NCBI GenBank assembly: GCA_051294905.1
Contig: CM119372.1
Span: forward strand, 16,740,001-16,804,000
Source: Botryllus schlosseri
Taxonomy: Eukaryota
Length of the DNA stretch: 64,000 nucleotides
Reading direction: 5' to 3'
In this document: positions 6,262 to 52,618 of the stretch, in pieces
How the letters are laid out: each line of letters begins with the position of its first letter
Position numbering within the stretch: the stretch's first letter is position 1
Notes under the pieces: generated by a model
Databases searched by the model: none
The model's input: the letters and a program-made list of their open reading frames with translations, nothing else
Told to the model about the DNA's origin: nothing
Translations under genes and position numbers: made by a program

Positions 6262-6644
6262 ATGGATTTTCGAAGGCTATTGCTGTTTGGCGTCTGTTTC
6301 TTATTCCAACAAGCGGATACAAGGAAGAGTGCAAAAAGTATGCGACTCTGTAATAGATTCCGAAGCCATTCGTTGAGGAAGGCCTGCCAGAAATCTCTTG
6401 CGAGTACGCAGACGTTGATGGTCGGTGCATCGATGGGAGTAATTGACGAAAGATATTTCATGTCACCCGTTCCACCTGCTAAAATCACGGACCGCAGCGT
6501 TGTAAACAATGGCGTCGGCTATTCTTTGGGATGCACCACAAACGTACGTTGCCCTGTAAATGATTTAAGCTACGCCGAGAATGAAAGAGAAAATATCCGC
6601 AACACGTCGCCCTGGGAGTATTGCACGCATTTCGATCCTAACAG
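6262..6644 (+). CDS. IL17: IL-17 family gene g1, coding exon 1 of 2 (204-aa precursor)
   Basis: ATG at 6262 opens a hydrophobic signal peptide (MDFRRLLLFGVCFLFQQADT). The frame ends with RCP...NIRNTSPWEYCTHFDPN-AG|gtattt, the IL-17 RSxSPW/DPxR motif cut by a phase-2 donor at 6645. The symbol is family-level only; no A-F orthology is implied. Confidence 0.93.
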
Positions 6645-7952
6645 GTATTTGTTATTATTGTTCCTCGCGGCAGATTTAGGCATTAATCCGTGATATGTCA
6701 ATACGATTTGAGATGGGTTCATGGTCATTGGTCATGGTCAACTAATCATCATACGTGTGTACGACTTGACGACTGCACGACGTTTGCGCCCACATGATGA
6801 GATTATACATTTGGATTTCACAAATTGTATTCTCGTTAATTGATTTAAACTTTAATGAATCCATCAGAAAACAAGGATCAAATAAGGGTCGGGTCCTTGA
6901 ATACGGACTTCTATCATTTTAAGCTTCCAAACCAACTGTTAGTTGGTCACACACAAGCCTGTTGCATAATTTCTGGTATATTGCTCAATGATAATTCAAG
7001 ATTTGAAACCATAGCCTTTATTACAATACTCGCAATGTTTGAATTAAATACAAGGAACAAGACGCAATCGCGTTGTATCGCAACGCTGTTGCAAAATGGC
7101 GATGGTATTCGTAGATTTTGAGGTAATCATTACATTCGAAGCAATAACCGTTACAATTTTCATGAGTCATTTGTTACATCTAGAAGACGCCACTCCGTCT
7201 CAAGAATTAGCCGTCCTAGAGTCTTAGCAATATAGCCTACGATACGTAATATGCTGATGAACTTTTTTAGCGCTTAGAATTCCGATAACAAAGGTATAAT
7301 ACTACGCACGGCACTGGTAAATCCGTGTTGCGCAAACGATGTGACGCTCATACAGTCGTACACACGACAATGGCGTTTCGCCAGGATGACATGCTGACAT
7401 GTTACATTAATACTGACAATTATCGTAGGAGATACTCTATGTTGATTTGTCACGCCAGCACCACTCCTGGGGCAGACACTACGTTGTGGAGTATTCATTT
7501 CCAACATATTTGTGACGATTGAATATGTTCCTTACTGTTCTTGCGGGTAGGATAAATATACGTTTGTTTGTAGATAATTTTCAAATTAGATCGGTTGTTC
7601 CAGTTATCGCATGCTTTTGCTATCACTTAACTATATATGGGCCTCTTTTATTTTTGGAATAAATGCGTATGTAAGGTGTTTCGTTATCATGATATCATCG
7701 TGACATTGATGAAACTTATTTACTTTTGTCTGTAAATCAATACCATTATTCTCGCGGAAAAAAACAATCACAGGAATAAGAAGATCTGGTATAGAAATCC
7801 ATAGTAGCCAATCAGCAAAATGAAATACTAACCGCAAGATCATGTACAAAGGTTCCAGCCGTATATGTATTCACGAATCATAATATTATGTCTATCACAT
7901 ATAATAATACCTGATTACAGTAGCAAAATATTTAACTACGCCTTTCGTTCAG

Positions 7953-8184
7953 ATTTCCGCAGTTCTTAACTCAAGCTGTGTGTCTTTGCAACGGCTGCAT
8001 TGACCCGGCAACGGGCCATCATCAGCACAGCTTGATCTCAAGGCCAATAACGACAAAGATCACAGTTATCAAGCGTGCCTCGGACGCCACACGAAAGTTT
8101 AGTGACTGCACAAGCCGGACTTGTCGTGAAGAACAAATAGACATCGATGTGGGTTGTTACTGCAGCATACCTCTATTGAATTGA
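7953..8184 (+). CDS. IL17: IL-17 family gene g1, coding exon 2 (cystine knot)
   Basis: Acceptor cctttcgttcag|A completes the Arg codon. It reads FPQFLTQAVCLCNGCIDP...SRPI...VIKR...IDVGCYCSIPLLN*, carrying the AxCxCxGC and VGCxC motifs. TGA at 8182-8184. Confidence 0.93.
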
Positions 8185-11100
8185 ATGTCTCAGCGTCACT
8201 GGTAAAGCAACGAGGGATCCGATCCAGTATGGATACACGGGATGGTGCGAAATCCTGAAAAATTCTGGTACGAACTGTTGTAAAAGGTCCTCTGTGAACA
8301 CGAAGCTACAGACTTCACGCGGCATCACTATGCTAATTCCAAATTATTGTACTTACACCGTGCAGCAGTACATGTCTGGCTGTGTTCTACCCCGCTTATC
8401 GTAATTAGCCGAAATCCAGTTTGAATTGTGTGGGATTTTGGTTGGTTGAGAGTAGTATTGGTGCATTTCGTAATATCAAACTCACATAAAGATGTGACTT
8501 TACCTAATTTTCTTATCACTTGGCACCCAGTATTGTGGGGATGCTCCGAGAATTGGAGCTCAGAAACTATTCTTCACCACCGACCCAAATATGTAATTTC
8601 CGTCTAATCACACATAGATAACTTTGCTACTGCATGGGAGTATAAAGTCCTAGGCCAAGCACGTAGCAGCGACGGAAGCAAGACATTCTATTATTAACAA
8701 CTAAATAGCGTGATATGTCAAGCAAAATTCTCAAAACTCCGTATGGTTTATTACGTCACAAGGTGCCTCTTATAGATTTGGGATGAATTCCCTTTGCTGT
8801 CATCGTGAGACGGCTGAAATTCAACGAATTCTGATCATGTATGTTAAGATTAACGGAAACTACTGGTATTTCACGAAAAAATGGTCACTGGGAATAGATA
8901 GAACCTGTCAAGGTTCGTTTGCCAACGCTAAACTCTGAATTACAAACCGAACGTTAGCATCACCTCTCTTTGGTGCTCCAATATAGACGGAGCAATGTGG
9001 ATCATATCCACGTACTAGATGCGCTATGCGCACGTGTTGACAAATCTTCATGTATATAGATGTAATGGTAATATACGAACTATGTCGCGAACAACTGCCG
9101 TTACAGTATCACAGAGATATCGTCCTATTTATTGCGCAGAATTATATTTATAAAATCCTGACGTATTTAAAGTCACTGGACTACGTTTTGTCTATTTTAA
9201 GAAGTGCTACAGATGTGCATCTATCAGTGTCCGGACAGCAAAAAATCTGATAATGACCTGTTCTTGAACAGGTATCATTGTTCCGTGGAAAATGACGTGG
9301 GATTCTACACCTGCGGAAACTATAGCGTCCAAGTCACCAATAGACACCGTTATTGTGATGGTTGGAAGGGAAGTCCAATAAGTTTTGTTAAACCGATGTA
9401 CGAACCTGACACCGCGCACTTCCGAAAATTAACAAGCAGTTTCTGTCAGCTTACTTCCGAGATATCAGTAATATCCAATTGAATGGGACTCGGGAGTGTC
9501 ATTTTAAATGTATTGCGACATACATTTCGTAATCAACCTTGCACCTTAGTATTTCTGTCGGTATGATATTGACTTGAACTATGGTAACATTGTAATACAA
9601 ACACGATCCCTATTATATTCAAACTCAGTTGATTCATACATAGATTTCTATCTTATAAGGAAAAGCAATTTAGGTACATAATTATAGCGACCAGAGATTC
9701 ATAGTCCAAAATTCATTATTCTAATATTTGATGTCACTGTACCCGTAACACTAGCAACGACAATGGCATCATTTAACTTTTCATTTCACATTTTACTCGT
9801 TCTGATTATAATTTTTGTCTAATACCTACAGCACTTGCATAGTACGTCTTGCATGAAATATATCGCATTCGTTTCATAGATGTTACGGAAGGGTGTGTTA
9901 CCTATGCAGCCACAAATTGAATTATTTATGTTAATAAACAAGATACAATCTGTTATTTATTGATGCTACTTCCTGGAACAGACGGCGAAAGGCTTTCGCC
10001 TGCGTAGTGAACAATATTTATGCAAAAATCGTTATTTATCAATTGTATATCTCCATCATCGGTGCCTGTCACCATATATATTTGTAACCGGTTTATCTTG
10101 TAAGAAAACAAAAAATATTACAGTTTTCTTGGGAACGAATATATTCAGAAGACCGACACGCAACGCACTAGTCGGTGTAAATAGATCGCGCCGTGTGTGT
10201 GCGCTGTGCCTGTGATTCGTACAAATATTGTGCCTCGCGTGAGTGCAGACGTCTATACACTGCATGATGATGATGAAGCAACGTTGCATATCTGTTCGTG
10301 CTTGGTGTCAAGATCGACTGGGAATTCTTCATGTGCACATAAATTAGAAGAAGCATGCCCAAATATGCTTGCTTGACTTCGACGACACTCCTATATGCCA
10401 TTTATAACATATCGGAATGTTTACTCCAGCGCAATTCAAAATATCAGCGATTAAATGGCGATTACGATCTCAACGTGCTCTATCGAGCACTCCCAAGGCT
10501 GGTAAGTGCTAATGAAGGCAGCTCTTTAGCGATGATCAGTTGTATATCAGACAGGATACAACGGATACGTGATTCGTTTCTGATTACGCTTGTCTCGCAT
10601 ATCCATTGTAGCGGCGTTACAATTTGAAGGCACATTTATTTCCGTTCAGTTACGAAACGGATGATTTACAAACCCAATATCAAGCATGTACGTTGTCTTC
10701 CCTAGTCGCGGTACAGTCACCGACAAACGCATTATGTCATTGCCTTATAGGTGAACTTCGCGACGTATATGCGATAAGATAATTGCGGTTAGGTGCCAAC
10801 GATCAGATGCGGTACAGGGGAGATTGTAGATAGCGAAATTCTGAGCAGGAGAATTATGGATAACGAAAGCGTTATATCACAGAAATTGGCGTTGGGGATA
10901 TAGATTGCGATATTCAACACCGAATGGATGATAGTTTCTTTTTTTCCAAAACATGGACTGTGAGATATATCTATTGTTTTAGAGATATGGATGACACACG
11001 GAGACCAATTTCGTTTACCTGGCTCTATTATATCGTGAAATGAGAATATCGGGTTCCAAAAGTGGAAAAACTTAATAGAATATAAATGTAGGCACTGATG

Positions 11101-13376
11101 GATCGTGATTGTTAAGTACAGAAATAGGTTCGGACGATCTGTTGGTTTGGGTTCTAGAACGCAACTTGGCTGCGTTCGCGGCCTCAAGTAGGTCGCTAGA
11201 CCAGCGGTGCTTCGATCTGGTATAATTGAAGCTGTTAATGCTTGGTACGGGAGAGGAATGTGAATCATAAATCCGGATTTGGTGGTTGTATCACGGAATG
11301 ATTGCCAGATATCTACACCTAATACTTTCGGTTGGAAAGTTTCATTTGATCTAGAGTGAGTAAGAGACGGAGTGCATATCCCCGAATCCGAATGCATAAG
11401 TTTATAAAAGAATATGTGCCTGATTTCTCATTCCAATTGATGTATTGCATAGGGTAGGAACAATACATCTATAGGCCGATGAAGATTCGGAAAATCCCCA
11501 GGAAGATTGATCCGAGCCATTTATCATTGCTGCCGAATCAGATCTAGCGAACCGCATTTACAGTGTATTTTTAACTTTGCTGACAGCTAGGTAAAGTAGA
11601 GTCGCGAAAAGTTTATATAAAACAAGGCTTAGCACGACGCCTCTAACAAACAGCTTTGCAACGGAAGGTGTCGTACGTCGCAAATAGCGTCAACGTCGTT
11701 AACACGGCAGTCGAGCTTTAGGGCTATATACTCGCTTAAGTCGTTACGAACCGAGTCCCACGTATTGGTCACGTTCCACTGGCTTATTATCATCGCTATT
11801 TCATACATTACATATAATATTACTATATTTATTTTCATGAAGGATAACCGGCCATAATCTATTCCTAATATGAGCTATTCGCGTCGTCACAATAACAAAT
11901 GCGGGAAGGCTTTTACTTGTAAACACGGAACAAATTACTAACAAGGATTAGAGATAAATAGCGTTAGGAATGTGTGCGGACAATTTGTCAAACTATAGTG
12001 GGAACCCGGCAAGGAAACATTTCACTTCTTTGTCCGTGTCAGCGAGTTCGCTTTATGAGAGGTGTTGTCGTTTGTTCAATCAGATATATCGATGACAGCA
12101 AAGTCGACAATAATAATTAATCCAATGTAAAACTCACAATATTTGTTCAAGATTAGTTTCATCATAGGGATCAATCTCTAGGAGCATATAAGGCAACCGC
12201 TATTTCGCGGGGAGCCGTCTATAAGTTATCGGTATGCAGATGAAATATATAGGCAGATTGCGTATTCTTCAACGCTAAAGCTTCAAAATATAGATCGAAA
12301 TATGTCGAATTGGCGTCTAAGCCGGTTGTTATGATATCCTGACAAAACACGTCTGGAATATCATTCGCGCAAGTACAGTGATGTTATTTCGAACTAATTA
12401 GTAGTGACTCGTAATTGTACCGTCGCTCATTCGCGTTTTCCTGTTTCAGTACACAGTAGGTTTCCGACGAGCTTTCGTAATTCGTACGCAATAACAAGTT
12501 GCTCTCAAAGCAGATACAAGTGCTTGAAGGTTTTCATGCGGTATATTCTGCATTCGTACTCTAAATTCACGCTTTCACTTTGCCCACGCGCGCAGGCAGT
12601 CAGGCACTGCCTGAAATGCGGGAATGAGTCAAAATCGACGCCTTGGAATGAACGGCGGTAAAATGCGTCGCGTCCGAATGATTCTCTTCGGACATCAAGC
12701 ATTGCCATTTTCGGGTGTGATGAATTCTTTACATATTAGAACCAATTATGCATTCAGAGGTACATGCTATAATCGTAAGACGCTATGATTTACGGCGAAA
12801 TCTGAGTGATTTGCCATAATTAAATTTGAAAGGAATTATTGCCAATAATTTTGTTGATTGATTCATTTCGCATTAGTGTAATCGATAATCACCAAAGCAA
12901 CACCATTTTCATTCGGTATGACGTATGTCGCGAGGCAGCAGGTACAGCAGAATTTATACTTGAATCCGCATTGGATACAGGTCTACCGCAGTCATATACA
13001 GACAACCATAGCGACGAGATCGTGAATACTAGATCGTCAGCATATATAATTGTTAGCCTGTATTGAATCGCGCGTTACTTGGAAACAAGTCAAGTTTCGT
13101 GGCAGCGGCAATCCCGAATCTATTTCGGAGGGTCACAAAATGTTATCTTGCGACCCAAGTGCACTGTCACTATCTCTTCCGGCCATTTATCGTTTGCGAT
13201 AATGGCAGCAGCATTTCAAGGCCATTACCTTCGGGTTGACGTGTGTTGTCATAATCCATAACAATCGTGACAATTGAAACGGCACCGTCACTCAAAAGAC
13301 GCCGGGAATTTTGATGAACTTTTGACTCACGCTTTAAAACATGGTTGTTTTCATTCTCAGATAAATTACAAACACT

Positions 13377-13984
13377 ATGAAAATGCAAGCCAAAACATAC
13401 TGCCTGTTTGCTATATATATCACAACATGCTGTGTGTACGGCAGGAGCATACGGGCGAAGAGAGACGTTGCCATTCCGAAACATCTAATGAATCTTTTTC
13501 ATTGGGGACAACGCTTTCAGCACTTGGGAACGGGGATCATCGACCTGAACGAATTAAGGGAAAACAATTCGACTGAATCCGTCGATTTCGAACCGACCAC
13601 GATCCCACCGCCCCTTGGGGGCAACGTCGTGTCTGGATCTATAGCCGAAGACGACGAAATGAACGAAGCGCTGCCCGGTCAGAATCAATCAGAGATTTTA
13701 AAAGAATGTAGGAAGATATTGGACAAGGATCTTCGCGACATCTGCATAAGGGTCGCCACTAACCCAATACTGAAAACCATGACTGGTGTGCGCGCGTACG
13801 CTGCTCAACAGTCGCGATACACCACGAGCAGGGGCTTCGCATCTGTCGCCGGCCCTCGACTAAAACACTCCGTGTGCAAGGAGAAAACCATCTGTCCAGT
13901 ATATCGAACGGGCGAGCAGAGCCATTTTGTTAGCCGCCGAAGCCTATCTCCTTGGACAATGTGCCACGAATTTGACCCCAACAG
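13377..13984 (+). CDS. IL17: IL-17 family gene g2, coding exon 1 of 2 (282-aa precursor)
   Basis: Signal peptide MKMQAKTYCLFAIYITTCCVYG (the start could be the second Met at 13383), then RAKR. Ends ICP...SRRSLSPWTMCHEFDPN-AG|gtaagc, phase-2 donor at 13985. Confidence 0.94.
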
Positions 13985-14379
13985 GTAAGCCCGACGATGA
14001 GATGTTTACCATCTATATAGGTGAAAAATATGATTAGCGTATAATGCCGTGGACTGTTTTGTTTTTGCCTCTTCTATTAGAATAAATCTGTAAGATAAAA
14101 CCATAGCATGTGTTCTGATCCGCGTCAATGTAAAGGGAACAATTTACATGCAAATTGCTGTAATCATTTCTCGGCATCTCGGCATACCATACAATTATAT
14201 GCCACTCAACCATGTCGGTTAAGTCGCCTCTAATGCTCTAATTACTAGCCCTTGACACTTTGAATCGCTTAAACGTATCACGTTCAAATGCACACAACAT
14301 ATAGATAAGTATAGTCAGCTCATCGCTACCTAACGTATCTTGTCATGAAGATGAAGGCTTATGGTTTGCATTCTTCCAG

Positions 14380-14620
14380 ATTTCCGCAATGGCTCAATAA
14401 AGCAGAGTGTCTGTGTCAAGGATGCATAAGTCAGATTGACGGCAAGGAAGATATTAGAAACGTCCACTCGCAGCAGCTTTCCGTCGACATTGCCGTGCTG
14501 AGAAAAGACAACGTGGTGATGGATTTCAGCAAATGCACCAAAGAGACTTGCCGAGAAGGCATCGAAAGCATTGCTATCGGCTGCCATTGCGCGCTGTCGA
14601 AGATTATAACGAGCACATAG
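14380..14620 (+). CDS. IL17: IL-17 family gene g2, coding exon 2 (cystine knot)
   Basis: Acceptor ttcttccag|A; reads FPQWLNKAECLCQGCI...AVLRK...IAIGCHCALSKIITST*; TAG at 14618-14620. Confidence 0.94.
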
Positions 14621-19483: not shown

Positions 19484-19780
19484 TTACATAGATCCGTCGG
19501 CCAGTGACTGTTCTCCATGGAAACCCGGCGAAAATGTGGGTATGACCTCGCGAATATTATTTCGTTCGCCTTGGATTTTCAAGGGCCGACGCAAGTTCAC
19601 CGGACACCGCACGAAGCCCCCATCCATATCTCTCGGTTTAATCGATTCCATGGTTTCCGCCTTCGTTACCGCACTTGGCGCCGAAGTGCGAGTCTCTGCG
19701 TCGAAGCTCCAGCAGACGACTCGAAGACGAGCAACGCCCCCGATAGCGGACTGGTTTCGCCTGTTCCTTTGATACCCATG
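19484..19780 (-). pseudogene. Probable decayed IL-17 exon-1 relic resembling g1
   Basis: A 98-codon stop-free frame contains GVARLRVVCWSFDAETRT and FVRCPVNLRRPLKIQGERNNIR. Compare g1 SLRKACQKSLASTQT and NVRCPVNDLSYAENERENIR, and g3 GVQRLRNACRS. No signal peptide, intact SPW/DPNR motif or partner knot exon was found. Confidence 0.45.
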
Positions 19781-20927
19781 TTAAACTGCTTTGAACACGG
19801 AAACCGTTCATGCATTTCGGTGTTAAATATTTTACACGGAAGCGGCCAGCGGTATGCCTTACCAAAAGTATATACCTATATACCTATTTTAGTCATCGGG
19901 CTTATTTTTCTTATGGGGGGGTGTCTTCTTATTGGGTAAGTTTGGCTCAAATATCGACCAAAGGGGAGAAAAGAGACGAAAAGAGGTTGAGAAACACTGT
20001 AACACACGATGATTCGGTGGACCCATGCGTTTGCGTTGCTGTATGGGTCGCCATTGTGTCACCAGAATCACTCATCGTGCGTTACAACGAACGAAGTACC
20101 GTTTATTTTGAAATAACCTAACGCTGGGACTTGCGAACGTGTGTCCTAATTAAACGGGGAAGTGACCGCATAAACGTCGTTTTTGAGGTGTAATTTTTAC
20201 TTTTGTTCCGTTCCCTGGCATTTTCACCAAATAAAGCGGATGTCCTGGTCTTCCGACTTCCGAATCAAGCAGGTTCGACTGCGCTTTGGATATGGCATCG
20301 GGGAAAAATAGCGAGTGCTAAAATGCGAATGTCAATAATAGCTGTTAATTAAAAATTGTGAGTATCATAATAGCGAACAAGTCATACTTGCGTGTGTGAT
20401 ATAGGCTCAACTATGATTTTACCGCGTTCAATGTTTTATCTAACACGCTCTATCGCCCGCTATAGCTGAATTTGTTACACCTAGTATAGTATATCTATTT
20501 AATTATCATTATTCAGAATTCGTTCGCGTTCTAGTGCGTGGCGAACAACTGGTGATGAGTGCCACTTTACAATTTTAATAATAACAGTAGCCGTAAGGTC
20601 GTAGTTCTATCTAACTTTCCGAAGAGGAAGGATACTATCCTTAATGGAGTGACTTGCAGATTCGCCGACTATATTGCGTCGAATGAAGGCAGATTATATA
20701 CAGAAGCCAAATCCTAACAATTCTGTAATTTATCTATCGCAATTTTTCGTGTGTTGCAGAGGAATAACAATTTGACTATATTTTACTGAAATTTAAAAAA
20801 ATTACTTCAATATCGACATTCACCTTAGTGGGCAGGTTTCTTCCTGGACTGTGTGTATACTGTATATTTACCGTTTACACTGCGAATACAGAAAATATTG
20901 ACATTAGTTATTCATATTAGCGCGGAT

Positions 20928-25307: not shown

Positions 25308-26041
25308 ATGAGCATTAGGTTTGTGGTTATCTGCACACTTTTCTCCCCATGGATATCCTGCATTTGGAGTCAACACGCAGTTGGTGAGATCCCAACTTGG
25401 GTGACGAATTCGACTGCACAATTGACGGTTGAAGAACAGCCCGAGGAAAAAGATGACCCAAAAGACAACCCGTTTATATTCCCGGTCATATTCGAACCTA
25501 CTACTCAACATATTGAGAAAACAACAACAACAACAACAACATCTCTTCCTGAATCACATTCCCCATCGGAGTCAAATAATGCGTCGCCTTCGAACGCGTC
25601 GGATAGCGGCAGTACTGGAGTTGATGATGCTGTCCTTAGCCCAAAGCCTACTGTTACAGTGACTACAAGTACAATTGATCCCAAGACAGCGAGAGTTGCA
25701 AGCCGAAAACGTAAAATGGAAAGACAAAATAAACTAAGATGTAATAAACTGCTGAAAGGAGTTCAGCGTTTGAGAAACGCCTGTCGTTCAATCACCCACG
25801 AAGCGTTGGCCAATACTGAATACGCTTACGTGATGTCAAACAATACGGACGTGGATGGGATGAAAAGAGATTTGGTCAACCAGGGACTGAGAAGAAGTTT
25901 AGATACCACCCCAATACTTCCTGGTTTACAAAATGAGAACGACATAGGTTGTCCTATTCGAACACAATGGATGGCGGGGGCGAACCCGAACGAACATAGT
26001 TTGTCACCCTGGGCATATAAGCAACATTACGACCCTAACAG
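25308..26041 (+). CDS. IL17: IL-17 family gene g3, coding exon 1 of 2 (322-aa precursor)
   Basis: Signal peptide MSIRFVVICTLFSPWISCIWSQHAVG and a Thr/Ser-rich stalk. Ends GCP...NEHSLSPWAYKQHYDPN-AG|gtaagg, donor at 26042. Confidence 0.94.
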
Positions 26042-26588: not shown

Positions 26589-26823
26589 AATTCCACAAAT
26601 GATGAGCGTAGCCAAATGCCTATGTGAAGGGTGCATTGATCCAGATCTGGAAGGCGAATTTATAGAAAACAAGAACTTCGTTTCGAAGGAGATAACACGG
26701 TATTTGAGAGTTTTACGAAGAGATGCTACAGCAGGAAAATCCTACTCGGACCCGAAGTCATGGCAAGAGAGCTTGGAGGAAATAGCGATAGGCTGTCATT
26801 GCATGAGACCTAGAATATTATAA
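26589..26823 (+). CDS. IL17: IL-17 family gene g3, coding exon 2 (cystine knot)
   Basis: Acceptor tattttttctag|A; reads IPQMMSVAKCLCEGCIDP...RVLRR...IAIGCHCMRPRIL*; TAA at 26821-26823. Confidence 0.94.
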
Positions 26824-31949: not shown

Positions 31950-32677
31950 ATGACGTGCGGAATGCTGCTGATTTGCGCTATTTTCATTTTACGAACGCAA
32001 CACGCTGCTAGCTATCCATTGAGTATTGGTGCATCGTATGCGCCCTTCGACATAGTGTTTACGCCGCCGCCTTATACCGCTGAAAAAGTCGCAGAGGACA
32101 GCGTACGGCTACTGAAGAACCCATTTGACCACATATTCCGATATTTTAATCAAGATTACAATTTTACGACGAACGCGCCCGACGCAAATGTTCGCAATAT
32201 CACCCGATCAACAAGTGAAACGGGCACTTCTTTGTACGGGACATTATTCACCGGAACGTCAGCCAACTTAGGCGCTCTCAGCACAACACCAACCAATCCA
32301 TTGGATATGCATGACCACAGTCAAAACGGCACTAGCGCGGCAGCGACAGAGAGGGACCTCATAAAAGAAAATTGGGAAAGGTGTGAAAAACTCGCCTCAG
32401 ACCATCTTCGAGAGGCATGCCGATCCATCGTCGAAGAAACGCTCGCCAACACCGACTACGCTTACGTGCTAGTCGACGACAACGACTTGGACGGACTGAA
32501 AAAAGAGTTAACCGATCTGGGACAGAGAAGAGCTTTTGATGTCAGTCCGATGTTGCCCGGTATCCAAGGCGACTATGAACCTCCGTGTCCTTCGCGGAGC
32601 AAGTGGAATGACGGTACTCGGAACAATCAACGTAGTTTGTCACCGTGGACATCTCGGCAACAGTACGATCCTGATAG
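31950..32677 (+). CDS. IL17: IL-17 family gene g4, coding exon 1 of 2 (325-aa precursor)
   Basis: ATG at 31950 gives signal peptide MTCGMLLICAIFILRTQHAAS. Ends PCP...NQRSLSPWTSRQQYDPD-AG|gtaagg, donor at 32678. Closely paralogous to g3 (ACRSI..E.LANT.YAYV). Confidence 0.93.
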
Positions 32678-33039: not shown

Positions 33040-35105
33040 CAGTGGTTCCCAACCGGGGGAAATTCCTCCTGGTGATGGAATTTTAAAATGTTTAGGGGGA
33101 ATCTGGCTTTAGGATTGTATCGGAAGATACACGACAGGTTCACTAGGTTTTTAGATTTATATGGTAGAAGTGTTAAGTATGAAACTAGTTCTTTAAAATT
33201 GTATGTTTCTTTGGCGGATTTTAAGTGTGGTGTACGTTTAAGTGCCTTCCGTAGATATTACACCCCTGATAAAGTCAGGCTCGCGAAACGATTTCGTTGG
33301 ACCCGTGACAGTCTCTCGACCAAATTTCTACTAATCAGGAAAAAGTCAAGTGATGTTGGACACGGGAGAATAGCTTACTCTGAACAACAACAACATTATG
33401 TTTAAACTGAAATCAATTCCGACATTATAAAATGACTTACTAAGCGTTCTTACTAAGTTTCAAATCAGATCGCGGGCCCTCAAATATGACCTCGCGGGCC
33501 GCGTGTTGTTGACCCCTGGTATAGGACTACTGTAGTTTGCAGCAAGAGATGACGTGATTGTATTGTAAATTAATAGCGTCATTACTAGAGCAAGTCTTTG
33601 TTGTAGTGAAATCCGTGGACAGTTACACATATTTTTCACAAAAGTTGCAGTAAAAAAGCGCATTTATGGACAAGTTCCTTGAAATTATCAGGGTATGAGA
33701 TACTCGAATCGTAACGTATCCAAGGGACTGCAGCAAAACTAAATGCTGGCGACTTTAACAAAATCAATAGCCTGAACAAATCGACCCAGTGAGAATATAA
33801 TTTTCGGCGGTCTATAGCCTGAAAGGACCTCAAATTTAAACGCCTGTGAACTAATCAAGCGATCTAGATACCTATAGTGCCAAATATTTCCAGTAAAAAG
33901 TTAGTTGTATAGACAATCGAAAATACTTGCAAAAAGTTACATGAAAAATCGAAAAGCGTTGCAATATGTAGCATGAAAAATCGAAAAAGTTGCAACAAGT
34001 TTCATGACAAAATGAAGAAAAGTTGCAATATAAGATTCCTCCAGACAGCTAAAACATCGTAGTACGTAACTTCTGAGTATTTAGGAAACTGCCGGAAGTG
34101 GTAAAAAAAAGTTGCAACAGTTGTAAAAACTTGCTCTAGTCATTACTAATAGCCAGAGGTCACTGGTCTGTGGTCAGTAACGGAGTCCTACTGTGTCGAA
34201 GTACTCAAGTAGATTTTGCCCACTCGTGCTACTTCCACAAGTGGTTATGTTTTCTCATAGTGTACTTCCACTTCTACTTGGTCAGATTTTAGGCAAAACT
34301 AGTTACTTTTTACCATTTGAATTGTTATAACTAGAAATCTGAGATAAGTTTTAATCACTTTTATGTATGAAATTATGATAGAAAATGCGTGAAATCGGCC
34401 CTGTATCGCGGTAACCGGATATGTTTACGTAGATTGTGCCTGGTTGTAGCCACCTCTTATTAACTGCTAAAAGCATGCAACCCCTCGGTCTTATATTTTT
34501 TTGAAACTACGTTCTTGAGCATTTTTCAGACTTCTACTCGAAGTGGATTTGATGTCTTAAAAGTTTCTATTTCCACTTGTAATTGAGTAGAAAGTCATTT
34601 CGGTACTTTTACTTGAGTAGCAATGATGAAATTGACCACCTCTTCATATAGAATACACTGGACAGCACAACTTTAGCATTAGCATCCGAGGGACACGGCC
34701 GACCATGAAGCGAGATCGGGAGGTTTAGAAATATTATCCAAACGCTGATTCCAGATTTAAAAAAAATTAGAATCAGTGTTATTGTAGACCGGCAGTCTAA
34801 ATTAGACATATAAAACAGTCTTTTTCTGCCACATAAGACTTCTTGTGTACCAACAACCCGCAAAATTCTGCGAAAGCGGTTGGCGAACGTGTTTGTAACC
34901 CCTATAATAGTTATCTAGAATTCCAAATGAGTTTTGTGAACAAAACCCAATAAAATTAGCGACGAGCAGTGCACTGGTAACCGTGTTGCTATGGGGACCT
35001 CGTGCATATGGATATACTGTATGTATTATATAGGCCTGTTTATTTTGCAAGTGATTCTGTTCCCCACTAGAAACCTAGGAATCCTCCACCGTTTGGGAAC
35101 CACTT
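33040..35105. mobile_element. Charlie-type element with nested repeat fragments in the g4 intron
   Basis: Ends cagtggttcccaacc/gtttgggaaccactt (13/15 inverted match); internal MITE ends and a minisatellite; no clean TSD. Confidence 0.5.
33931..34031 (+). repeat. Degenerate minisatellite (about 31-nt unit)
   Basis: Three or more copies of catgaaaaatcgaaaa(a)gttgcaa-like units. Confidence 0.6.
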
Positions 35106-38226: not shown

Positions 38227-38476
38227 GATTCCGCAATACATGAACGTGGCCAGGTGTCTATGCGCGGGTTGTATCGATCCCAGCATGAAAGGGGAGACTG
38301 TGGAAAACAGGAACCTAATTTCGGAAGAAATTACGAGAAGTATGAGAGTGATTCGGAAAGATAAGACGCTGAAAGACTTTTCGGAGTGCCCAGGCTCAAA
38401 ATCGAAGGCATGCTACGAATCTATGGAAGAAGTAGCAGTGGGATGTCACTGCAGAGCTCCTACCATTATATCATGA
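38227..38476 (+). CDS. IL17: IL-17 family gene g4, coding exon 2 (cystine knot)
   Basis: Acceptor tattatag|G completes AGG; reads IPQYMNVARCLCAGCIDP...RVIRK...VAVGCHCRAPTIIS*. It is the only phase-matched cystine-knot exon seen on + downstream of 32677. Confidence 0.92.
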
Positions 38477-43179: not shown

Positions 43180-43417
43180 TCAGTCACGAATGCAGTGACA
43201 TCCGGCGTTTACATCAAGAGGTTGATATGAAACCGTACAGTTCTGGCACGCTTCGCATTCAGGAACTGTGTAACTTTCGTTGTTAGCCACTCTTACCCAG
43301 GTTTCTACCGTGATAATTTTGGAATGGGCTAGGGGCAACACTTCCAATTCGCCAATACTGTTACGCTCGTAGCAATATCGACACAGACAGTTCGCGGAGC
43401 TTAATAATTGTGGATAT
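43180..43417 (-). CDS. IL17: IL-17 family gene g5, coding exon 3 of 3 (cystine knot); not in the ORF track
   Basis: Minus-strand acceptor ttattctttttag|A. Manual translation: (R)YPQLLSSANCLCRYCYERNSIGELEVLPLAHSKIITVETWVRVANNESYTVPECEACQNCTVSYQPLDVNAGCHCIRD*. TGA at 43182-43180. Confidence 0.92.
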
Positions 43418-44876: not shown

Positions 44877-45388
44877 ATCAATAGCGTATAATTTCACACT
44901 GCATCGTGTACCCCCTACTTTGGTGCTTTGTACCCCGAAGGGGCTCATGGACCCCTGGTTATAAACCCCTACTATTAGTCGGTGATAGTTTCTGAAAGTT
45001 ACAGTGACAATCAGCCCAGTTTTCTGAGTTTCTGAAAGAATGAACCAAAAGGTAGTTACTCATAAAGATGAAATGCCAATGCGAAACTGTCATATCATAT
45101 GACTCATATGTAACTTATATTGTGCTCAAAGAATATAATGCAAATATCTATGTTCGCATTGCTATATTATAACTTCTGACTCAGAAGGTTCTCGGATTCA
45201 CAAATCCATTCAGTCCATCAAATGTCTATGCGAACATTTCACAGTTCCTGAAACGGTGGAACTTTTTTGCTGCACTGTCATTGATAGATTTTCATAAAAC
45301 GTTTTTATTCGACAAGGCGCATGAGCTCAAAAACACCGCAACACTCGGAAATTTACTGATCGTCCCCGGAATGCTATCCCCTGTTGCA

Positions 45389-45460
45389 CGTGATCATGGT
45401 GCAAAAGACCAACAGGTGATAAGCGCCAAACTTTTCTTTTAATAAACAACAACAACAACA
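45389..45460 (+). mobile_element. 72-bp 5'-truncated retroposon insertion
   Basis: Ends AATAAA+(caa)n; flanked by the 13-bp direct repeat atcccctgttgca (45376-45388, 45461-45473). Confidence 0.7.
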
Positions 45461-45811
45461 ATCCCCTGTTGCATAGTTCTTTATCTCGTGTGGTACATAT
45501 TTGTAAATCTGTCCTGGCCCACACAATGTCCCAATAGTTTCTCTCGAAACTTTTGTATAAATAATTGTCCCTAATTTGGTATACCGCACATTCTAGTCCG
45601 TGACGCACCTGAACTTACAGCCGAAAAGCGTCACTCCCTTTTATCAATAATTCATCAAATGTGAGTTGTTGTTGATTGGGTTAAAATACGTCCTTCAATC
45701 CCCGAATTTGTAGTAAGTAGGTTAAATATCTTGTTGCCGTCATAATGAAAACGCTGGGTCAATGTCGCCGCATCACGATTCACGACTAAACGAAGTAATC
45801 ATACTGGCAGT

Positions 45812-47008
45812 CAGACTTGGACAACTAGAAAATTTTCAGCTATTCCAAATTAGATTAGAATTAGAACTAGAGCTGCACAGTTGTTTTTCAAATTAGATTG
45901 GAATTAGAATTAGAGCTGCACGATTTTTCCAAATTAGAATAAAATTAGAATTACAGCTACACATTTTATTTTAATTAAATTAGAATTAGAAGTTAAATCA
46001 CTGAATTCGCAAAAACTTGGAAATTGAATGAGATTGTGAATGAGAAATTAATAATACAGCAAAAATAAAGTCCAGTTCATATCAAATGACAGTGCATTAA
46101 CGTCTGTACAACAAGCTGCTTGGCTCGTTTTGTACTATACCAGGGGTCACCAACACGCGGGCCACATACGGTCGGCCAGCTGATTTGTGATTTTAGAAGA
46201 ACGCGAAGTAAAGATTTTGAAATGCTGAAATTGGTTTCAGTTTCAAATTATTTTAGTTGTTTCAAAATTAGCTATGCCTGTGCCCAACAACACTATTCCT
46301 CACTAGCTGAAACGGATTCGGCGATGGCAACAGCATTACATAGATGGAGAGTCAGCTGATAGGAGCATATTGTCTTGACGTGCAATGGCCCAAGCACTAC
46401 CAAGACCAATAAGCTTAGAAAATGGTCTGGGACTTTCCCACAAGATCAATATTTAGGGTGAAATATTCTTTCAGCTGGTTTCATGTCTGGCTAGTCGCAA
46501 TATCAATTCATTAGTCGCTGAAAAGCGTGATCAGGCATCGTAAACAGCTCATAGTTGAAAATAAAATGAAGTTGATAATCATAATATTTCTTGTTGTATT
46601 TGTACTTCTTTATTAAAATTACTTCTTTTGTGGTATAACCATGTCCATCGCCCACGCAAGTGAGCACGGCGTTGTACTAACATAAAGTTTTAAAAACGTG
46701 ATCGCAACTAAAATGTTGTTCGCAGACTACAAGCTACTATACCAGTATGGCTATTATTATTCGTCACAATAACTACTATGATTGTACGGGCGGTGTAAGT
46801 AATGCGATGGTTTCTTGGTAGCAAAAAGCCGCGGACAAAGAGGCATTTTTAGGAAACCAATAAATTAGATTAGAACTAAAATTAGAGCACAAAAAAATTA
46901 ACAAGTTAGATTAGAATTAGAATTAGAGCATAAAAACATTTCACAAATTGCATTTCGCTCTAATTTAGGGAAATTGGACAACTAGAATTATCTAATTGTC
47001 TAAGTCGG
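45812..47008. mobile_element. hAT-type element with (TTAGAA)n-like subterminal arrays
   Basis: Imperfect TIRs cagacttggacaa/ttgtctaagtcgg; TSD ctggcagt/ctcgcagt (7/8); aattagaattag arrays at both ends; a Charlie-type end nested at about 46141. Confidence 0.7.
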
Positions 47009-49029
47009 CTCGCAGTTTACAGTTACTCAGAGGTTAAAGCCACCGTTTTAGTGATTTGTAACTGTATTCAATCGACTAACTCCATTGTCTATGCATAAAT
47101 ATGTTTCTACATTCGATCCCGAATAATCAAGCATTCCCCTGAAAAACGAAGGTAGGGATTTGGAGATAACATTTTGGCAACATTCCACAGGTCCGGCCCA
47201 TAAGCGATTATAAAGTTCGAATCCGGCCCGCGGTGCAATTCGACTTTGAATCCTTTCCTTACAGGTCACCAATTGATATTTCTGCCTTGCGTTCATACGT
47301 ATGACAGTATTCAAGAAGTTACTTCGAACGTGCATAACACCGGACGGGTGGAGGGATAGCGCGAAATGTCATAAAATCTCCCAAACTAGTCGAAGCTGAC
47401 AGAATATTGCATTATTCGCGCGAGATTTTTCCCCATTCTACCACGATCATCTGTGAAGTCCAACTATTATTATTATATGTTAAATTATCATTATTATATG
47501 TTCATCAAATTGACGTTATGCTACATGGGTGGGGCATTATACCCTACAAAATAGAGCATCCCAGTACAATGCTATAGACGCTTCTCCGCTTCGTCATGGC
47601 GAAACTGATCTTTTGAAAAAAGCTTCATCCACAAATTTAGCTAAACAAAGCAACATATTATGATAAGTTAAAACATAAGGATGGAAATTCTTAAATGACA
47701 GTCAGCGGGATAGCCTTTAGCCTATATTCGCCGGGAATGCATTCTGGGTGAGCTCATAAATGGCTACTGTACTCCATTTTTACCCGTATCCGTTACAGAA
47801 CGCTTCACTGCATATCAAACACGACCTAGGGCATTGGCAGTTGTCAAAAACTATCAGCTGGAGCTGTGCACATCTTATCCTGAAAGTATGACGACATAGA
47901 TATTTTTATTTAATGAAGCCAAAGAAAAATTGCGTGTGTTGTAGATATGAATTGAAATTCTACTAATCTTATTAGTATAGTAATCCCTTTGGGGGCATAA
48001 TCTTAATTAAATTATTACATATTTGCATTCGCACGAAAAGATAGGCCAACGCACTCGAGGGACAGCCAGATAATTAATCAATTGAAAACAGGCTATCGAC
48101 ACTATCGTAAGTATTTGCCTAAATTTCTCACTCAATACCACGTTTTTTTGTTATAGGACCAGACGACGATCCAATGGGAAACCGAACTTTACGGGGTAAA
48201 ACACCCGCAGTGTACAGCATTGCACTGGCGTAAAGTTTTAGGAACGTGATTGTTAAACTGTGTGGTCTGTTTTATCTCGATATTGAATCATGCGGCTCGC
48301 AGCATCACAGAATTTTGAAAAATGGCCCACGACCCGTTTTGAGTTGGCTACCCCTGCTTTAATGCAATGGTCCATAACCTTTCTTTCAAATCGACCCTTA
48401 TTTCAAGAGAAAATGAAATTGAAACGAACTTGCGACCCATATAATTTTGGGAATACGAGCGTAAATATGGGTGTGTACGACAACTATTCCCCACTTGACA
48501 ACCACGGAGGACAGTATAGACGTAGTACGAAAACCAGAAAATTGTGCAATTATCTAAGCATTTTATTAAGTATAGGGGCCAGAGGTGTAACGAATAAGAT
48601 TTGTGTTGGTTACCCCAGGCCCCACGCTAATTTACCTAGGCTTACTAACAGCTGCAAAAAGAGAAATACAGTTTAGGAGATGATATGAGAGTTCCTACGA
48701 AATCGGTAATTGAGAGAAGAAAAATCGTCAATGAATGACAATCGGCTTATTCATCATATTAGCGAGTATTGCAGTAGTGAATATCAGGTGAGCATTTGCT
48801 GGCAAACAATTTATTCTGATAATAGATCGATTTTTTATAAAAGGTATACCTACAGAAATTCAGTAGCCTATTCATGTTTGTATCTTTATTTTTTGATGCC
48901 CTCACAGCCCTCGTGACAGAATTTGACGTATAACGTAGGCCTATGTGTTTTCGAATATGTCTATCTTGTGGATAAAATTTTAATGTAATTTGTCGATTTT
49001 ACATTACATGTACCCTTCTTTTATATTAC

Positions 49030-49265
49030 GGTTTGGTATATCGGGTTTACCGATTGTGGGCTGACCAGAGCTCAGTTCTCTCGCGCAATGATTTGACCTA
49101 AATTTTACGCCCTTCCTGCCGCATCCGTATACCCAATACTCCTTTACCTGAGCTTGGGACCGGCCCTAGTTTCACTAATCTACGACTGGGTTCGTTGGGA
49201 GGCAGCCACGGGGAATTGAACACGATAGTATCTGGTTTGCGAGACTGAGGTACGCGTACCCTCTG
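49030..49265 (-). mobile_element. Possible degenerate SINE/non-LTR fragment
   Basis: B-box-like gtgttcaattcc about 30 nt after a weak A box, followed by a GC-rich body; no second copy in the window. Confidence 0.3.
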
Positions 49266-49501
49266 CTCATAACACGCAGTGCGCGTGTCCGGGGCTATAG
49301 ACACTCTGATGAGACATATCATATGTGTTGATAAATAATTGGCTTCTCGTAAGTCGCGTATACCAGATCCCACCTAATTTAAAACATGTTTCCCGAGACA
49401 CACTTCAGAATCGTCGCGAGCCGCAAGTGGTACATATACATTGTACGTACAGCTTTGCCGTACCACATTCTGTCTTTAATCAAATCGCTACGTGGTCCGT
49501 G

Positions 49502-50299
49502 GACATATGAGCATGCAGGGTTGAAATGACTCATGTCACGATTTTCTGATGACTCGACTTGACTCGAGTCAATCTGTGTATTGACTCGACTTGGACTCGA
49601 GTCATTGCGCATGACTCGAAGCAAGTCATACCACTCGAGACTCAGACGGCCAAGACCGATATTTCATTGTAATTTCGCAGAACAGTAAAGTAACCACCCT
49701 ATTGGGATTTCGTCTATTGGTACTGGTACTTTAAAATGCGACCAGAAACTGTTACAACTGAGGAAAATTAGTATTTTAGAAATGGGAACCATTCGATATC
49801 AGCAAACAGAGTTATAAAAGTGGGTTTAACAAGACTTTAACTGGAAACTGAGCAGTCAATACAATGACTTGGACTCGGACTCGAGTCATAATACCATGAC
49901 TCGGACTCGTACCTCTGCTCGATGACTTGGACTCGGACTTGACTCGGTGGCGAATTGAAAATTACTCGACTTGGCTCGAGTCAAAACTGTAAAAGTGAGA
50001 TTGACTTATGACTCGGAGCTTTATAACTTTGTTACAACCCTGTGAGCATGCGATACTTTGGCATGCGACAATTGGGTATGTGGGTTAAATTACGGGTTAG
50101 AATAGGTTAGGGTTGGATTTTATGGTTGGGTTAGGGTTAGGCTTATGCTTGGGGTTAGGATATATATAAGGGGTAATTTCAGGATTATGTTTCGGGTTAG
50201 GGTAAGTTTTTGGGCTACAAAGTCACATGATGAAGTAACGCATGCTGAAGTGTCCCATGCTGAAGTGTCGTTTTCCGTTGTGTCGCATGCTCATATGTC
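49502..50299. mobile_element. Inverted-repeat element with a degenerate TTAGGG core, interrupted by the family C MITE
   Basis: Removing 49516-50050 restores gacatatgagcatgcga, the exact reverse complement of tcgcatgctcatatgtc (50283-50299). GGTTAG-rich tract at about 50085-50208. Confidence 0.7.
49516..50042 (-). mobile_element. hAT MITE family C copy 2 (527 bp), inverted relative to copy 1
   Basis: Reverse complement is collinear with 44320..44876; perfect TSD tgagcatg. Confidence 0.9.
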
Positions 50300-50376
50300 G
50301 GGAAACCATTTTCTTCAGATGCTATATTCTCCGCTTCAAAGAATTCCTTTGGAGACAATATTGATGAATAACACAC

Positions 50377-50467
50377 CTGTTCCATTGAAAGTCCAACGTA
50401 TAATTCCACGGAGAAAAACTTCGAGTTTCGTAACTGCTTAGATTCTCATGAAGGGGGCATGACGGTA
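50377..50467 (-). CDS. IL17: IL-17 family gene g5, coding exon 2 of 3 (91 nt)
   Basis: Acceptor cgcattttttcag|TA, phase 1 in. Reads (L)PSCPLHENLSSYETRSFSPWNYTLDFQWN-AG|gtgtgt, phase 2 out, matching both neighbouring exons. Confidence 0.88.
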
Positions 50468-50978
50468 CTGAAAAAATGCGCACACACATTAGTGAAATCA
50501 ATAAACCAGCCATTGAATTCAATATAATCATAAGATGGTCATCGATCGCCCATCCCAGATCACGGTGAGCAACACTTGTGCGTATACTGACTCTTGTATT
50601 TTTTATGATACTCACAGTTCGCGTAATACCATGTTCTAACATACTGCTATAACCCACTGGTTTTCAAACGATTTCATTCCAGGACCCCTTCAGTGATATT
50701 TAAGCTGACATCCACATAAGAAGGAGCTTTCTGGTGACCCAGGTGCATGTTAAATAAAATAACAAGCGGGCACCACGGCATTAAAGCTCTAGCACGGAGC
50801 TGTCTAAGCTTTTTGCTAATGTGGGTCGCATTCCATTGGTCACTTGCGCCACAATAAAAAGCAGTCGTCAGTTTCGGTTGTGGCAGCTTGCGGAATATTT
50901 ATCATGATATTTCAAGATCGGGATTACGATTGATTTGAAATGACTATTGTCGCTTTGGAGCTTCGAGTCGGTATAGAC

Positions 50979-51879
50979 CAGGGGTGGCCAACCTTTTTGG
51001 CCAAAGTGCCGCATGTGGTTTTACGAACAATTGCACGGGTCACCTAAGTATTGATGATCTTCTGTTTATGGATAGATTAGGTAACGGTGAAAGCGAAGAC
51101 TTACGTTACTACGCACCAAAATCGCTGACATTTATGTCATGAAAAACCAGTGTTCGCTCATGTTCTATCCGCGCGACGCGCGAAAATATTTCAAAGTTGA
51201 CGAATGAATCCGGTCAATAATATCGGTACTTGCATATTGCTTGTTTTGCGGGTCCCAATTGTACCGCGTGGATCAGATTGCAATGGCAGGTTTCCGCTAA
51301 CGCACCTTGACCATTTTGGGTCAACACTTTATCGATCGATCTTTCTGGGAGCTCAATCGTGGAGTCACAGGCTTTCCTTCTACCACATTTTATATATCGT
51401 GGTGTATCCTAACTTGACGATGACTGGCGCCGAAATGCCTGTCCCGCGTGCTGCACACCACTAGACTGAAACATCCCACAGGATTGCGGTGATATAGGGG
51501 ATATTCTGTTCTCCCATATTTGAGAATACAATTAGACTCAATTCTGTATATTAGGCTATGTTTTTCGGGAGGGTTACTAAAAAGAATAAATCTAGAGCTA
51601 CGTAATCGCAGGAAGTATTTTCATATACAAATATTTACGTAAATTTGTGGGACATGGGCCTTTTCGTCTCCCTGGCTACTCCAATGCATCGAAACTGCTT
51701 CTTCTTTAGTCACCAGCACCCCAAATGTCGCGGTAGGACTAATCACAGCTTTGGTTGACCTTGAAAGTTCATAAAACTTGACGTTGGCAATTCATTTTTC
51801 TGTAATTTAACTGTAATTTCGATAATTATCATGCGGGCCACTCAAATCTTTCCCGCGTGCCACGGGTTGGTCACCCCTA
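50979..51879. mobile_element. Non-autonomous hAT/Buster element (901 bp) in g5 intron 1
   Basis: TIRs caggggtggccaac/gttggtcaccccta; perfect TSD gtatagac. Confidence 0.88.
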
Positions 51880-52332
51880 GTATAGACTGTCGCGGGTCGT
51901 ACGAAATCGTCCCGCTGGCCCTATTTTGGGCCCACGGCTTTAGGATATACTTATCCTTCGTGCGAGGTTCTAAATCGCCGAATTCCCCCGCTAGGAGAAT
52001 GATATTGTAATGTAACAAGAATTCCCACCACATTAGGAACCTCTGTTATTACAAAAACATATTCACGTCAAAATGTAAATGTGTAAGGGTTTCCCTTGAT
52101 CCTTGAATGAAGAGATAAGAATATGGAACCATAATGGATGGCAGCGGTATGTCACTTGGAAATGTGATGTGAATTGCATTTGTACCTTATAGAGGGGTTA
52201 TTTCGCGGTATTTACATTTATCTCATTATTATTATATCATCATATGTTGTATAAGGAAAATCATGTTTACATCTAAAGTTCTAAACGATTCACGGATAGG
52301 AAATGTCAGTAGCGTCGGAGAGGTATACTTAC

Positions 52333-52618
52333 GCTCGTCTGCCGGGCGTTTTATAGCCTTCGTGCTCTTTTTAACCCTTTTATGTCCTTTGCCATGATGA
52401 ATACACCTACTGCCTGTCACTGTATGTGTGTCTGAGATTGATTCCGTTTGATTTGACCATATCTCCTGAGAGTTATTTACTAGCGAAATGTTCGTGATGA
52501 CCAAATTATCCCCAGTTCCGTCTTTTACGGCATACGGGAAGCCATCCACCGCAAAGCTCAATGATACGACCAGACAGGCGCAGAACGTGCCGAGAGACTT
52601 TAGCTTACTACGTTCCAT
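52333..52618 (-). CDS. IL17: IL-17 family gene g5, coding exon 1 of 3 (signal peptide and N-terminal region)
   Basis: Signal peptide MERSKLKSLGTFCACLVVSLSFAVDG, N-glycosylation sequons NIS/NNS/NQT, and a consensus donor GAC GAG C|gtaagt (phase 1) that joins the 91-nt exon in frame. Confidence 0.85.

Follow-up and report, generated by a model that had tools for sequence, protein, structure and literature searches.

A probably ancient and conserved ascidian cluster of IL-17 ligand genes in Botryllus schlosseri, with five members in a 64-kb window and a sixth beyond its edge

Among the interleukin-17 (IL-17) systems described so far, the sea urchin SpIL17 family comprises 35 genes, most of them in tandem arrays with an organisation common to two urchin species; RNA alone revealed one divergent member, and SpIL17-1 carries its IL17 domain uninterrupted in one exon (Buckley et al. 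2017, PMC5457136). Non-chordate IL-17s retain the third disulfide of the cystine knot, whereas the chordate type has Ser at both positions (Huang et al. 2015, PMC4517768). Tunicate IL-17 genes are already known: the Ciona genes CiIL17-1 to -3 (Vizzini et al. 2015) are reported as lipopolysaccharide (LPS)-inducible, as cited in PMC8353272, and 6-7 Ciona entries appear in the same paper (Saco et al. 2021, PMC8353272). In the ascidian Botryllus schlosseri, a 60-fold upregulation of an IL-17 has been reported during allogeneic resorption, and the protein in recombinant form increased cellular cytotoxicity (PMC8398012). Here, we analyzed a stretch of 64,000 nucleotides (nt) of the B. schlosseri genome (GCA_051294905.1, contig CM119372.1, positions 16,740,001 to 16,804,000; C2:16740001-16804000 in the searched genome), referred to below as the window, which carries five IL-17 genes, g1-g4 on the plus strand and g5 on the minus strand. 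A literature search of incomplete coverage returned no description of this cluster, of its conservation across species, of a repertoire of at least 25 loci, of the ascidian intron position or of the N-terminal module reported below. Orthologues from the ascidian Styela clava are already present in RefSeq, most of them labelled 'uncharacterized protein'.

In our interpretation, to which we assign a probability of about 85%, an ancient and conserved ascidian cluster of six IL-17 ligand genes has five of its members in the window. A preceding sequence-only reading had described a five-gene cluster, and five is indeed the number within the window, where a six-frame motif scan returned the IL-17 signature at the five loci and at no other. 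The cluster itself extends further, as a sixth gene, g6, lies on the minus strand about 5 kb past the right edge (G000:C2:16809175-16811801, window-equivalent 69175-71801). The resulting order is g1+, g2+, g3+, g4+, g5-, g6- over a span of about 65 kb, with no more IL-17 members within 20 kb on either side.

The comparison with S. clava provided the evidence for the age of the cluster. The S. clava locus (OZ123514.1:14.841-14.874 Mb) contains eight genes, namely a 203-amino acid (aa) gene (-), XP_039268281 (+), XP_039268461 (+), a 110-aa gene (+), a 238-aa gene (+), XP_039268146 (+), XP_039268145 (-) and XP_039267381 (-), whose order and orientation correspond to those of g1, g2, g3/g4, g5 and g6. 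All eight genes are interrupted by the same phase-2 Arg intron found in the window. XP_039268145 occupies the g5 position and is alone in the S. clava cluster in having three coding exons, its phase-1 intron being placed 4 codons upstream of a conserved Cys, compared with 3 codons in g5. Exons of the gene flanking the S. clava cluster on the left, which encodes ion-transport and cyclic-nucleotide-binding domains, were matched about 9 kb left of the window (L026:866-1478, G000:C2:16730866-16731478; tblastx E 3.6e-23), and the left flank is therefore syntenic with S. clava; on the right flank no S. clava synteny was detected within about 12 kb. Judged by gene layout, the cluster is older than the split between B. 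schlosseri and S. clava, because the two loci are colinear in order, orientation, introns and left neighbour.

Phylogenetic trees were built on about 108 columns and 37-40 rows. The g2 gene grouped with S. clava XP_039268461 and a copy located at 3.764 Mb on C16 (98/97), g1 with XP_039268281 and its relatives (91/85), and g6 with XP_039267381 (97/96 to 99/99), of which it is the orthologue with 54% full-length identity. The paralogues would then have separated before the divergence of the two species, with only g3 and g4 as younger duplicates. As for g5, its position, its orientation and the shared phase-1 intron suggest that it is a fast-evolving orthologue of XP_039268145. The three subgroups proposed beforehand (g1/g2, g3/g4 and g5) were retained in part: the g3/g4 sister pair was recovered with support of 98/93 and 99/94 in different trees and g5 is divergent with an extra intron, whereas an exclusive g1+g2 clade was rejected by the approximately unbiased (AU) test (p=0.029), each of the two genes having its own S. 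clava orthologue. An additional cysteine pair common to g1 and g2, with one Cys right after SPW, probably explains the former grouping, and it also occurs in several other paralogues.

The gene models proposed in the sequence-only reading, four on the plus strand and one on the minus strand, were confirmed as intact and spliceable by open spliced frames and canonical GT..AG introns (Table 1). The spliced proteins are of 204 (g1), 282 (g2), 322 (g3), 325 (g4) and 204 (g5) aa, with positions 6262 and 52618 corresponding to the ATG of g1 and g5 respectively; the start of g4 at 31950 is backed by P0001, an open reading frame (ORF) from the genome of a relative showing 73% identity across 100% of g4 exon 1. 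In each gene an upstream ORF ending CP...[ST]PW...R is followed by a downstream ORF opening with [F/I/Y]PQ...A.CLC..C...GC.C. All five proteins possess the announced motifs, with small departures from the wording given for them, NTSPW in g1 and HSLSPW in g3 replacing RSxSPW and DFQWNR in g5 replacing DPxR. An N-terminal hydrophobic segment is present in all five (Kyte-Doolittle best 10-residue mean 2.0-3.4 within the first 35 residues) and the number of cysteines after this segment is invariably even. The strong divergence noted earlier was also borne out, since full-length identity among members is 25-33%, with the exception of g3/g4 (40%; 55% in the domain). The window contains zero N and has a G+C content of about 0.40.

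Assignment to the IL-17 cystine-knot family was verified with Pfam IL17 (PF06083, cut-off 24 bits) using the last exons alone, which returned 41.8-55.8 bits (E 6e-15 to 1.5e-10) for g1-g4 and 21.8 bits, just below the cut-off, for g5. The matches of all last exons begin at profile position 16, and the intron is therefore located between profile positions 15 and 16. When the spliced g5 domain was scored with our own hidden Markov model, derived from 36 tunicate and vertebrate IL-17 domains with g5 excluded, it reached 62.7 bits (E 1.7e-18), compared with 10.7 for the best shuffle (n=1000), and every knot residue was found to be kept. The knot motifs CLCxxC and GCxC, which supply the four knot cysteines in their C-x4-C ... 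C-x-C arrangement, occur in five out of five genes, with C207, C209, C212, C265 and C267 invariant in a 14-sequence alignment (A1). The tripeptide SPW, not CPW, is likewise present in all five, and in the same alignment S183 is nearly invariant and S227 invariant. By these residues, the cluster proteins are chordate-type IL-17s with Ser/Ser replacing the third knot disulfide, so that the earlier description of the family has to be amended: the host is a tunicate and its proteins are of the chordate type.

Evidence on the fold was obtained with P0032, a g2 orthologue (61% identical to g2) that stood in for the window proteins; it has 276 aa, and the contig that codes for it, from a relative, is 1,377 nt long. 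Its sequence matches in the PDB were IL-17A, IL-17F and IL-25 only. In its AlphaFold (AF2) model the domain showed a predicted local distance difference test (pLDDT) score of 81-95, and the top 50 Foldseek PDB matches were all IL-17A/F, with a TM-score by target of 0.52-0.76. An exhaustive search with the protein sequence of the g1 last exon returned 23 matches, the named ones being from the ascidians S. clava and Clavelina lepadiformis and from lampreys; no Ciona sequence was present among the homologue matches. The open frame of g5 exon 1 gave no match as a homologue query, Pfam returned nothing credible for the upstream exons and for five long ORFs of the window (10789-11397-, 14330-15001-, 15601-15987-, 19517-19939+ and 48290-48676+), and tRNA and Rfam scans of the window gave no match.

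The position of the intron was then examined across the family. As stated in the sequence-only reading, a phase-2 intron splits the same Arg codon in five out of five genes: the donor is ..A[CT]AG/GT throughout (the slash marks the splice site), while the acceptor consists of a pyrimidine tract, AG and one base (A/G) followed by an [F/I/Y]P codon, and because this layout is uniform in g1-g5 the Arg codon is always split after base 2. In the genome, the family acceptor (pyrimidine tract and AG one base before an [F/I/Y/H/R]P codon) precedes 23 of the 24 distinct last exons checked, including 19 of the 20 other PF06083 matches checked; the exception (C15:19227365-19227580, L018) has no AG acceptor at the family position and is very divergent, with CCACSHC for CLCxGC. 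Clavelina represents another order of ascidians, and its gene carries the intron at the ascidian position (TCTCG/GTAAGA ... cacag/G TTCCCC; L032, CAUIVY010000123.1). A lamprey IL-17B/D-like gene (L031, OZ110961.1) has its phase-2 intron 7 codons upstream (SPWTYR/LNRKADRVPE), and human IL17A is split at this lamprey-type upstream position. On the gene structures compared, the fixed phase-2 Arg intron is an ascidian-wide family trait and is not universal for IL-17, because Clavelina shares the position, the lamprey intron occurs 7 codons earlier and the SpIL17-1 domain is uninterrupted. As a separate observation, tblastn detected more IL-17-like copies adjoining the Clavelina gene, one of them within a called 378-aa IL17 gene.

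RNA read alignment was confined to one stretch covering g5 exons 1 and 2, selected as the least certain model. Raw RNA-seq reads (X24) connect position 50467 to 52333, skipping 1,865 nt with ends CT..AC, which correspond to GT..AG on the minus strand, and the same 52333/50467 joint was detected in contigs of three further runs, X10 (1,216 nt), X25 (380 nt) and X26 (154 nt), for a total of four runs from three studies. In these three sets of contigs the joint is recorded as 52335 plus two intervening letters, a notation that reflects a synonymous GAG>GAA variant where the g5 exon ends, and one X26 contig piece spans 50377-50467 exactly, i.e., g5 exon 2. Most aligned reads were 95-99% identical to the reference. 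The g5 gene is therefore transcribed and its phase-1 intron is spliced out as predicted; the second intron measures 6,959 nt. Continuity over the phase-2 junction was observed in contigs of relatives, namely P0032 (g2 type, with the sequence GATCCGAACAGATTTCCT), P0011 (256 aa, 1,551 nt; g3/g4 type) and P0009 (190 aa, 970 nt; XP_039268145 type), as well as in the S. clava RefSeq models. Runs guessed as RNA contained 0.06-0.26 of the words sampled from the g1-g2 and g5 stretches, a value not counted as expression evidence as the run type is itself a guess.

The window genes belong to a much larger repertoire. A search of the 495.5-Mb genome (219 contigs) returned 24 PF06083 matches above the cut-off, g5 not included, and the genome therefore holds at least 25 IL-17 loci. 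Seven same-strand copies at C2:21.73-21.85 Mb (L001, L002, L006-L009 and L019) form one tight clade (98/99) with near-identical pairs and therefore represent a recent lineage-specific expansion; one copy of this array (21747777-21747944) matches profile positions 6-61 only and may be broken. Further groups are located at C2:13.89-13.93 Mb (3 copies), C16:3.76-3.78 Mb (2) and on C8 (4), with single copies on C1, C14 and C15. The two C16 genes (C16:3764132-3775358; L010, L012) are most closely related to g2 and to the 203-aa gene of S. clava; a portion of the ancestral cluster has apparently been moved or copied. On the receptor side, eight matches to the SEFIR domain (PF08357) exceeded the cut-off genome-wide, three of them at C11:17.02-17.09 Mb.

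Different explanations of the locus were weighed against these data. A generic cystine knot is also what a member of another knot family (PTTH/trunk, noggin, NGF/Spaetzle or TGF-beta) would display, and the resemblance goes no further: at E<=1 Pfam assigned IL17 as the sole family to the five last exons, with no other cystine-knot family, and both the PDB sequence search and the top 50 Foldseek matches consisted of IL-17 chains alone. These results rule the other families out, and we give such an origin a negligible probability. The sequence-only reading had placed the genes in a lineage-specific birth-and-death expansion, according to which all members would derive from recent tandem duplication within the lineage. 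The sister relationship of g3 and g4 (98/93, with the 40% full-length and 55% domain identity given above), the different gene number in the two species (six vs eight) and the truly recent seven-copy array on the same chromosome would be expected from such a process; however, the AU test rejected monophyly of all six members (p=6e-5), g1, g2 and g6 pair with separate S. clava genes, and order, orientation, introns and left neighbour are common to both species. The recent-expansion reading was rejected for the six-gene cluster and we regard it as very improbable. What stands of the birth-and-death proposal is gain and loss on an old scaffold, and this later change is modest, consisting of the g3/g4 duplication here, three extra copies in S. 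clava and the two relatives on C16 here.

It is also conceivable that the cluster includes at least one decaying or non-functional copy, g5 being the likeliest candidate, or else g1, g3 or g4 in view of the RNA evidence being confined to g5. The g5 branch is very long (2.6-3.3 changes per column), its last exon alone falls short of the Pfam cut-off (21.8 vs 24 bits), it is devoid of the N-terminal C-x-C module and it differs from the RNA contigs by 7 non-synonymous vs 3 synonymous changes, while g3 has lost a C...C pair kept in the other members. Yet none of the five frames is interrupted, the splice sites are canonical, the number of cysteines is even in each protein, g5 RNA from three studies is correctly spliced, all knot residues are intact in g5, and a relative's sequence is 73% identical to g4 exon 1, so that we consider decay unlikely. 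A further possibility, compatible with an ancient ligand cluster, is that these IL-17-fold ligands serve mainly in development, regeneration, allorecognition-linked cytotoxicity or neuromodulation instead of pathogen defence. Old, individually conserved paralogues in a fixed order suggest distinct non-redundant roles, the Botryllus IL-17 response to allogeneic resorption and the cytotoxicity raised by the recombinant protein (PMC8398012) go in the same direction, as do the SEFIR matches in the genome with their group on C11; the LPS responsiveness of the Ciona genes, as cited in PMC8353272, fits classical innate defence instead. We hold a mainly non-defensive role to be possible, although on balance doubtful.

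The reading of the locus as an ancient ligand cluster must itself face several points that weigh against it. Direct RNA support in B. schlosseri is available for the g5 exon 1-exon 2 joint, the sole joint examined, and for none of g1, g3, g4 or the five phase-2 junctions. In the sequence tree g5 is a long unplaced branch, and its clade with XP_039268145 and P0009 is merely not rejected (AU p=0.27). Where the RNA contigs disagree with the g5 reference, seven of the ten changes are nonsynonymous, which fits relaxed or diversifying evolution of the N-terminal part of g5. The signal peptides are putative, being called on hydrophobicity only. A homodimer prediction with two copies of P0032:140-276 scored 0.58, compared with 0.41 for one control, and counts neither for nor against dimerisation, which the sequence-only reading had proposed in homo- and heterodimeric form. 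Finally, receptor binding and immune function would follow by analogy with the family and with the literature on other species.

Table 1. Coding exons of the six cluster genes (window coordinates for g1-g5; g6, right of the window, in L013 coordinates). Slashes mark exon boundaries.
Feature	Position	Strand	Content and support
g1 exon 1	6262..6644	+	putative signal peptide; C-x11-C (LRKAC) module; CP...NTSPW...DPNR; ends with AG of the split Arg codon; ORF and donor AACAG/GTATTT; hydrophobic N-terminus
g1 exon 2 (with stop)	7953..8184	+	IL-17 domain core FPQ...AVCLCNGC...GCYC; PF06083 55.8 bits, E 6.4e-15, profile positions 16-80; acceptor ttcag/A TTTCCG
g2 exon 1	13377..13984	+	ORF and donor AACAG/GTAAGC; relative's contig P0032/L027 (61% identical) continuous through DPNR/FPQW
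g2 exon 2 (with stop)	14380..14620	+	PF06083 47.9 bits; clusters with Styela XP_039268461 (98/97)
g3 exon 1	25308..26041	+	putative signal peptide; Ser/Thr-rich linker; C-x13-C module; CP...SLSPW...DPNR; ORF and donor AACAG/GTAAGG
g3 exon 2 (with stop)	26589..26823	+	PF06083 45.0 bits; no C...C pair between CLCxxC and GCxC; sister of g4
g4 exon 1	31950..32677	+	ORF and donor GATAG/GTAAGG; start at the Met kept in relative's ORF P0001
g4 exon 2 (with stop)	38227..38476	+	follows a 5.5-kb intron; PF06083 41.8 bits; acceptor tattatag/G ATTCCG
g5 exon 1	52333..52618	-	putative signal peptide and N-terminal region; phase 1 end (GAGC/GTAAGT); RNA joint 52333/50467
g5 exon 2 (91 nt)	50377..50467	-	(L)PSCP...RSFSPW...DFQWNR; acceptor ttttttcag/TA; donor AACAG/GTGTGT; RNA joint to exon 1
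g5 exon 3 (with stop)	43180..43417	-	YPQ...ANCLCRYC...GCHC; PF06083 21.8 bits by last exon alone
g6 coding exons	L013:7801-7332, 5424-5175	-	239 aa; split Arg codon CG/A

In the preferred reading, each gene of the ancient cluster would encode a secreted protein in which a signal peptide is followed by a variable N-terminal region and a chordate-type IL-17 cystine-knot domain, the variable region of g1-g4 and g6 including a short C-x11/13-C helical module. By comparison with the family, the proteins would be secreted as disulfide-rich dimers, and these would bind the SEFIR-domain IL-17 receptors encoded by the genome and drive SEFIR/Act1-type signalling with inflammation or cytotoxicity as the outcome. 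Counterparts of the IL-17A interchain cysteine pair occur in g1, g2, g4 and g5; g3 is missing the C-terminal cysteine.

The N-terminal C-x11/13-C (..LR..C) module is located at 6349-6387 in g1, 13707-13745 in g2, 25740-25784 in g3 and 32382-32420 in g4, and it also occurs in g6, in all S. clava cluster proteins examined and in P0032, P0009 and P0011; it was not found in g5, in the Clavelina protein or in the lamprey protein. In the P0032 model the module falls in a predicted helix-turn-helix (H96-106, H111-121), and for residues 101-120 the 10-residue block means are about 80-86. Of the six genes, g3 alone lacks the C...C pair located between the knot motifs; the first Cys of this pair aligns with the IL-17A Cys in HCPNS. 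In g3 (25500-25700, including a TTTTTTTT run) and g4 (32150-32330), long Ser/Thr/Pro-rich low-complexity linkers, which are probably mucin-like and O-glycosylated, connect the signal peptide to the C-x-C module. A dibasic R-x-K-R motif was observed directly after the signal peptide in g2 (13443-13466, residues 23-30, RSIRAKRD) and in P0032 (residues 6-15, GRSIRVKRQD), and this common motif may be a furin-type processing site.

Outside the coding exons, a dispersed repeat of about 470 bp was detected in g5 intron 2 (window 49400-50300), with 40 out of 40 scored genomic copies 90-94% identical among 5,912 first-look candidates and a word depth in the thousands in RNA-like runs; it resembles a non-autonomous mobile element that is young and transcribed. 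Short tandem arrays (period 32-42 bp) occur at 33915-34028 and 45846-45991 and, with a GGAGTC-rich sequence near the right end, at 62803-62896 and 63827-63998, and no function is suggested for them.

These findings leave the current understanding of the family intact. An ordered cluster retained since the divergence from S. clava points to distinct roles of its members and not to mere copy-number amplification, and the repertoire of at least 25 loci compares with 3-7 genes published for Ciona. The curated gene models, among them that of the three-exon g5, which is easily missed, offer a basis for expression studies with public single-cell data and could identify which paralogue is the 'IL-17' of the Botryllus cytotoxicity experiments, while small but usable evolutionary markers are provided by the intron position specific to ascidians and by the N-terminal C-x-C module. 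A wider proposal, which we regard as a long shot, is that styelids keep a large IL-17 ligand repertoire, part ancient and part fast-expanding, together with expanded SEFIR receptor arrays; the six-gene cluster would supply non-redundant ligands, each bearing a lineage-specific N-terminal module, stapled by a disulfide, that would serve as a pro-domain or confer receptor selectivity, and the resulting ligand-receptor code could be used in colonial allorecognition, cytotoxicity or regeneration.

When compared with known systems, the locus resembles the sea urchin SpIL17 family in its large repertoire and conserved tandem arrays, and differs from it in that the SpIL17-1 domain is contained in one exon; non-chordate IL-17s also depart from the window genes in keeping the third knot disulfide (PMC4517768). 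With the Ciona genes, compared by published descriptions, the window members share the condition of tunicate chordate-type ligands, whereas the Ciona repertoire is far smaller than that of at least 25 loci found here. The vertebrate proteins (human IL-17A/F structures and lamprey ALJ83295) are alike in fold, in the four knot cysteines, in the Ser for the third disulfide, in the CP cysteine and in a cysteine aligned to IL-17A HCPNS; they are unlike in the phase-2 intron placed 7 codons upstream (lamprey), in having no C-x11/13-C module (lamprey protein) and in the lack of linkers of the g3/g4 type. As to the CLCxGC form, it corresponds to the IL-17B/C/D/E class rather than to A/F. The closest system is the S. 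clava cluster, which shares order, orientation, the phase-2 Arg intron throughout, the phase-1 intron at the g5 position, the C-x11-C module and the left-flank channel gene, its orthologues showing 50-63% domain identity to the respective B. schlosseri genes. The two loci differ in that S. clava has eight genes compared with six, in the duplicated g3/g4 pair of B. schlosseri, and in the kin of the 203-aa gene and a g2-like copy, which in B. schlosseri reside on C16:3.76-3.78 Mb.

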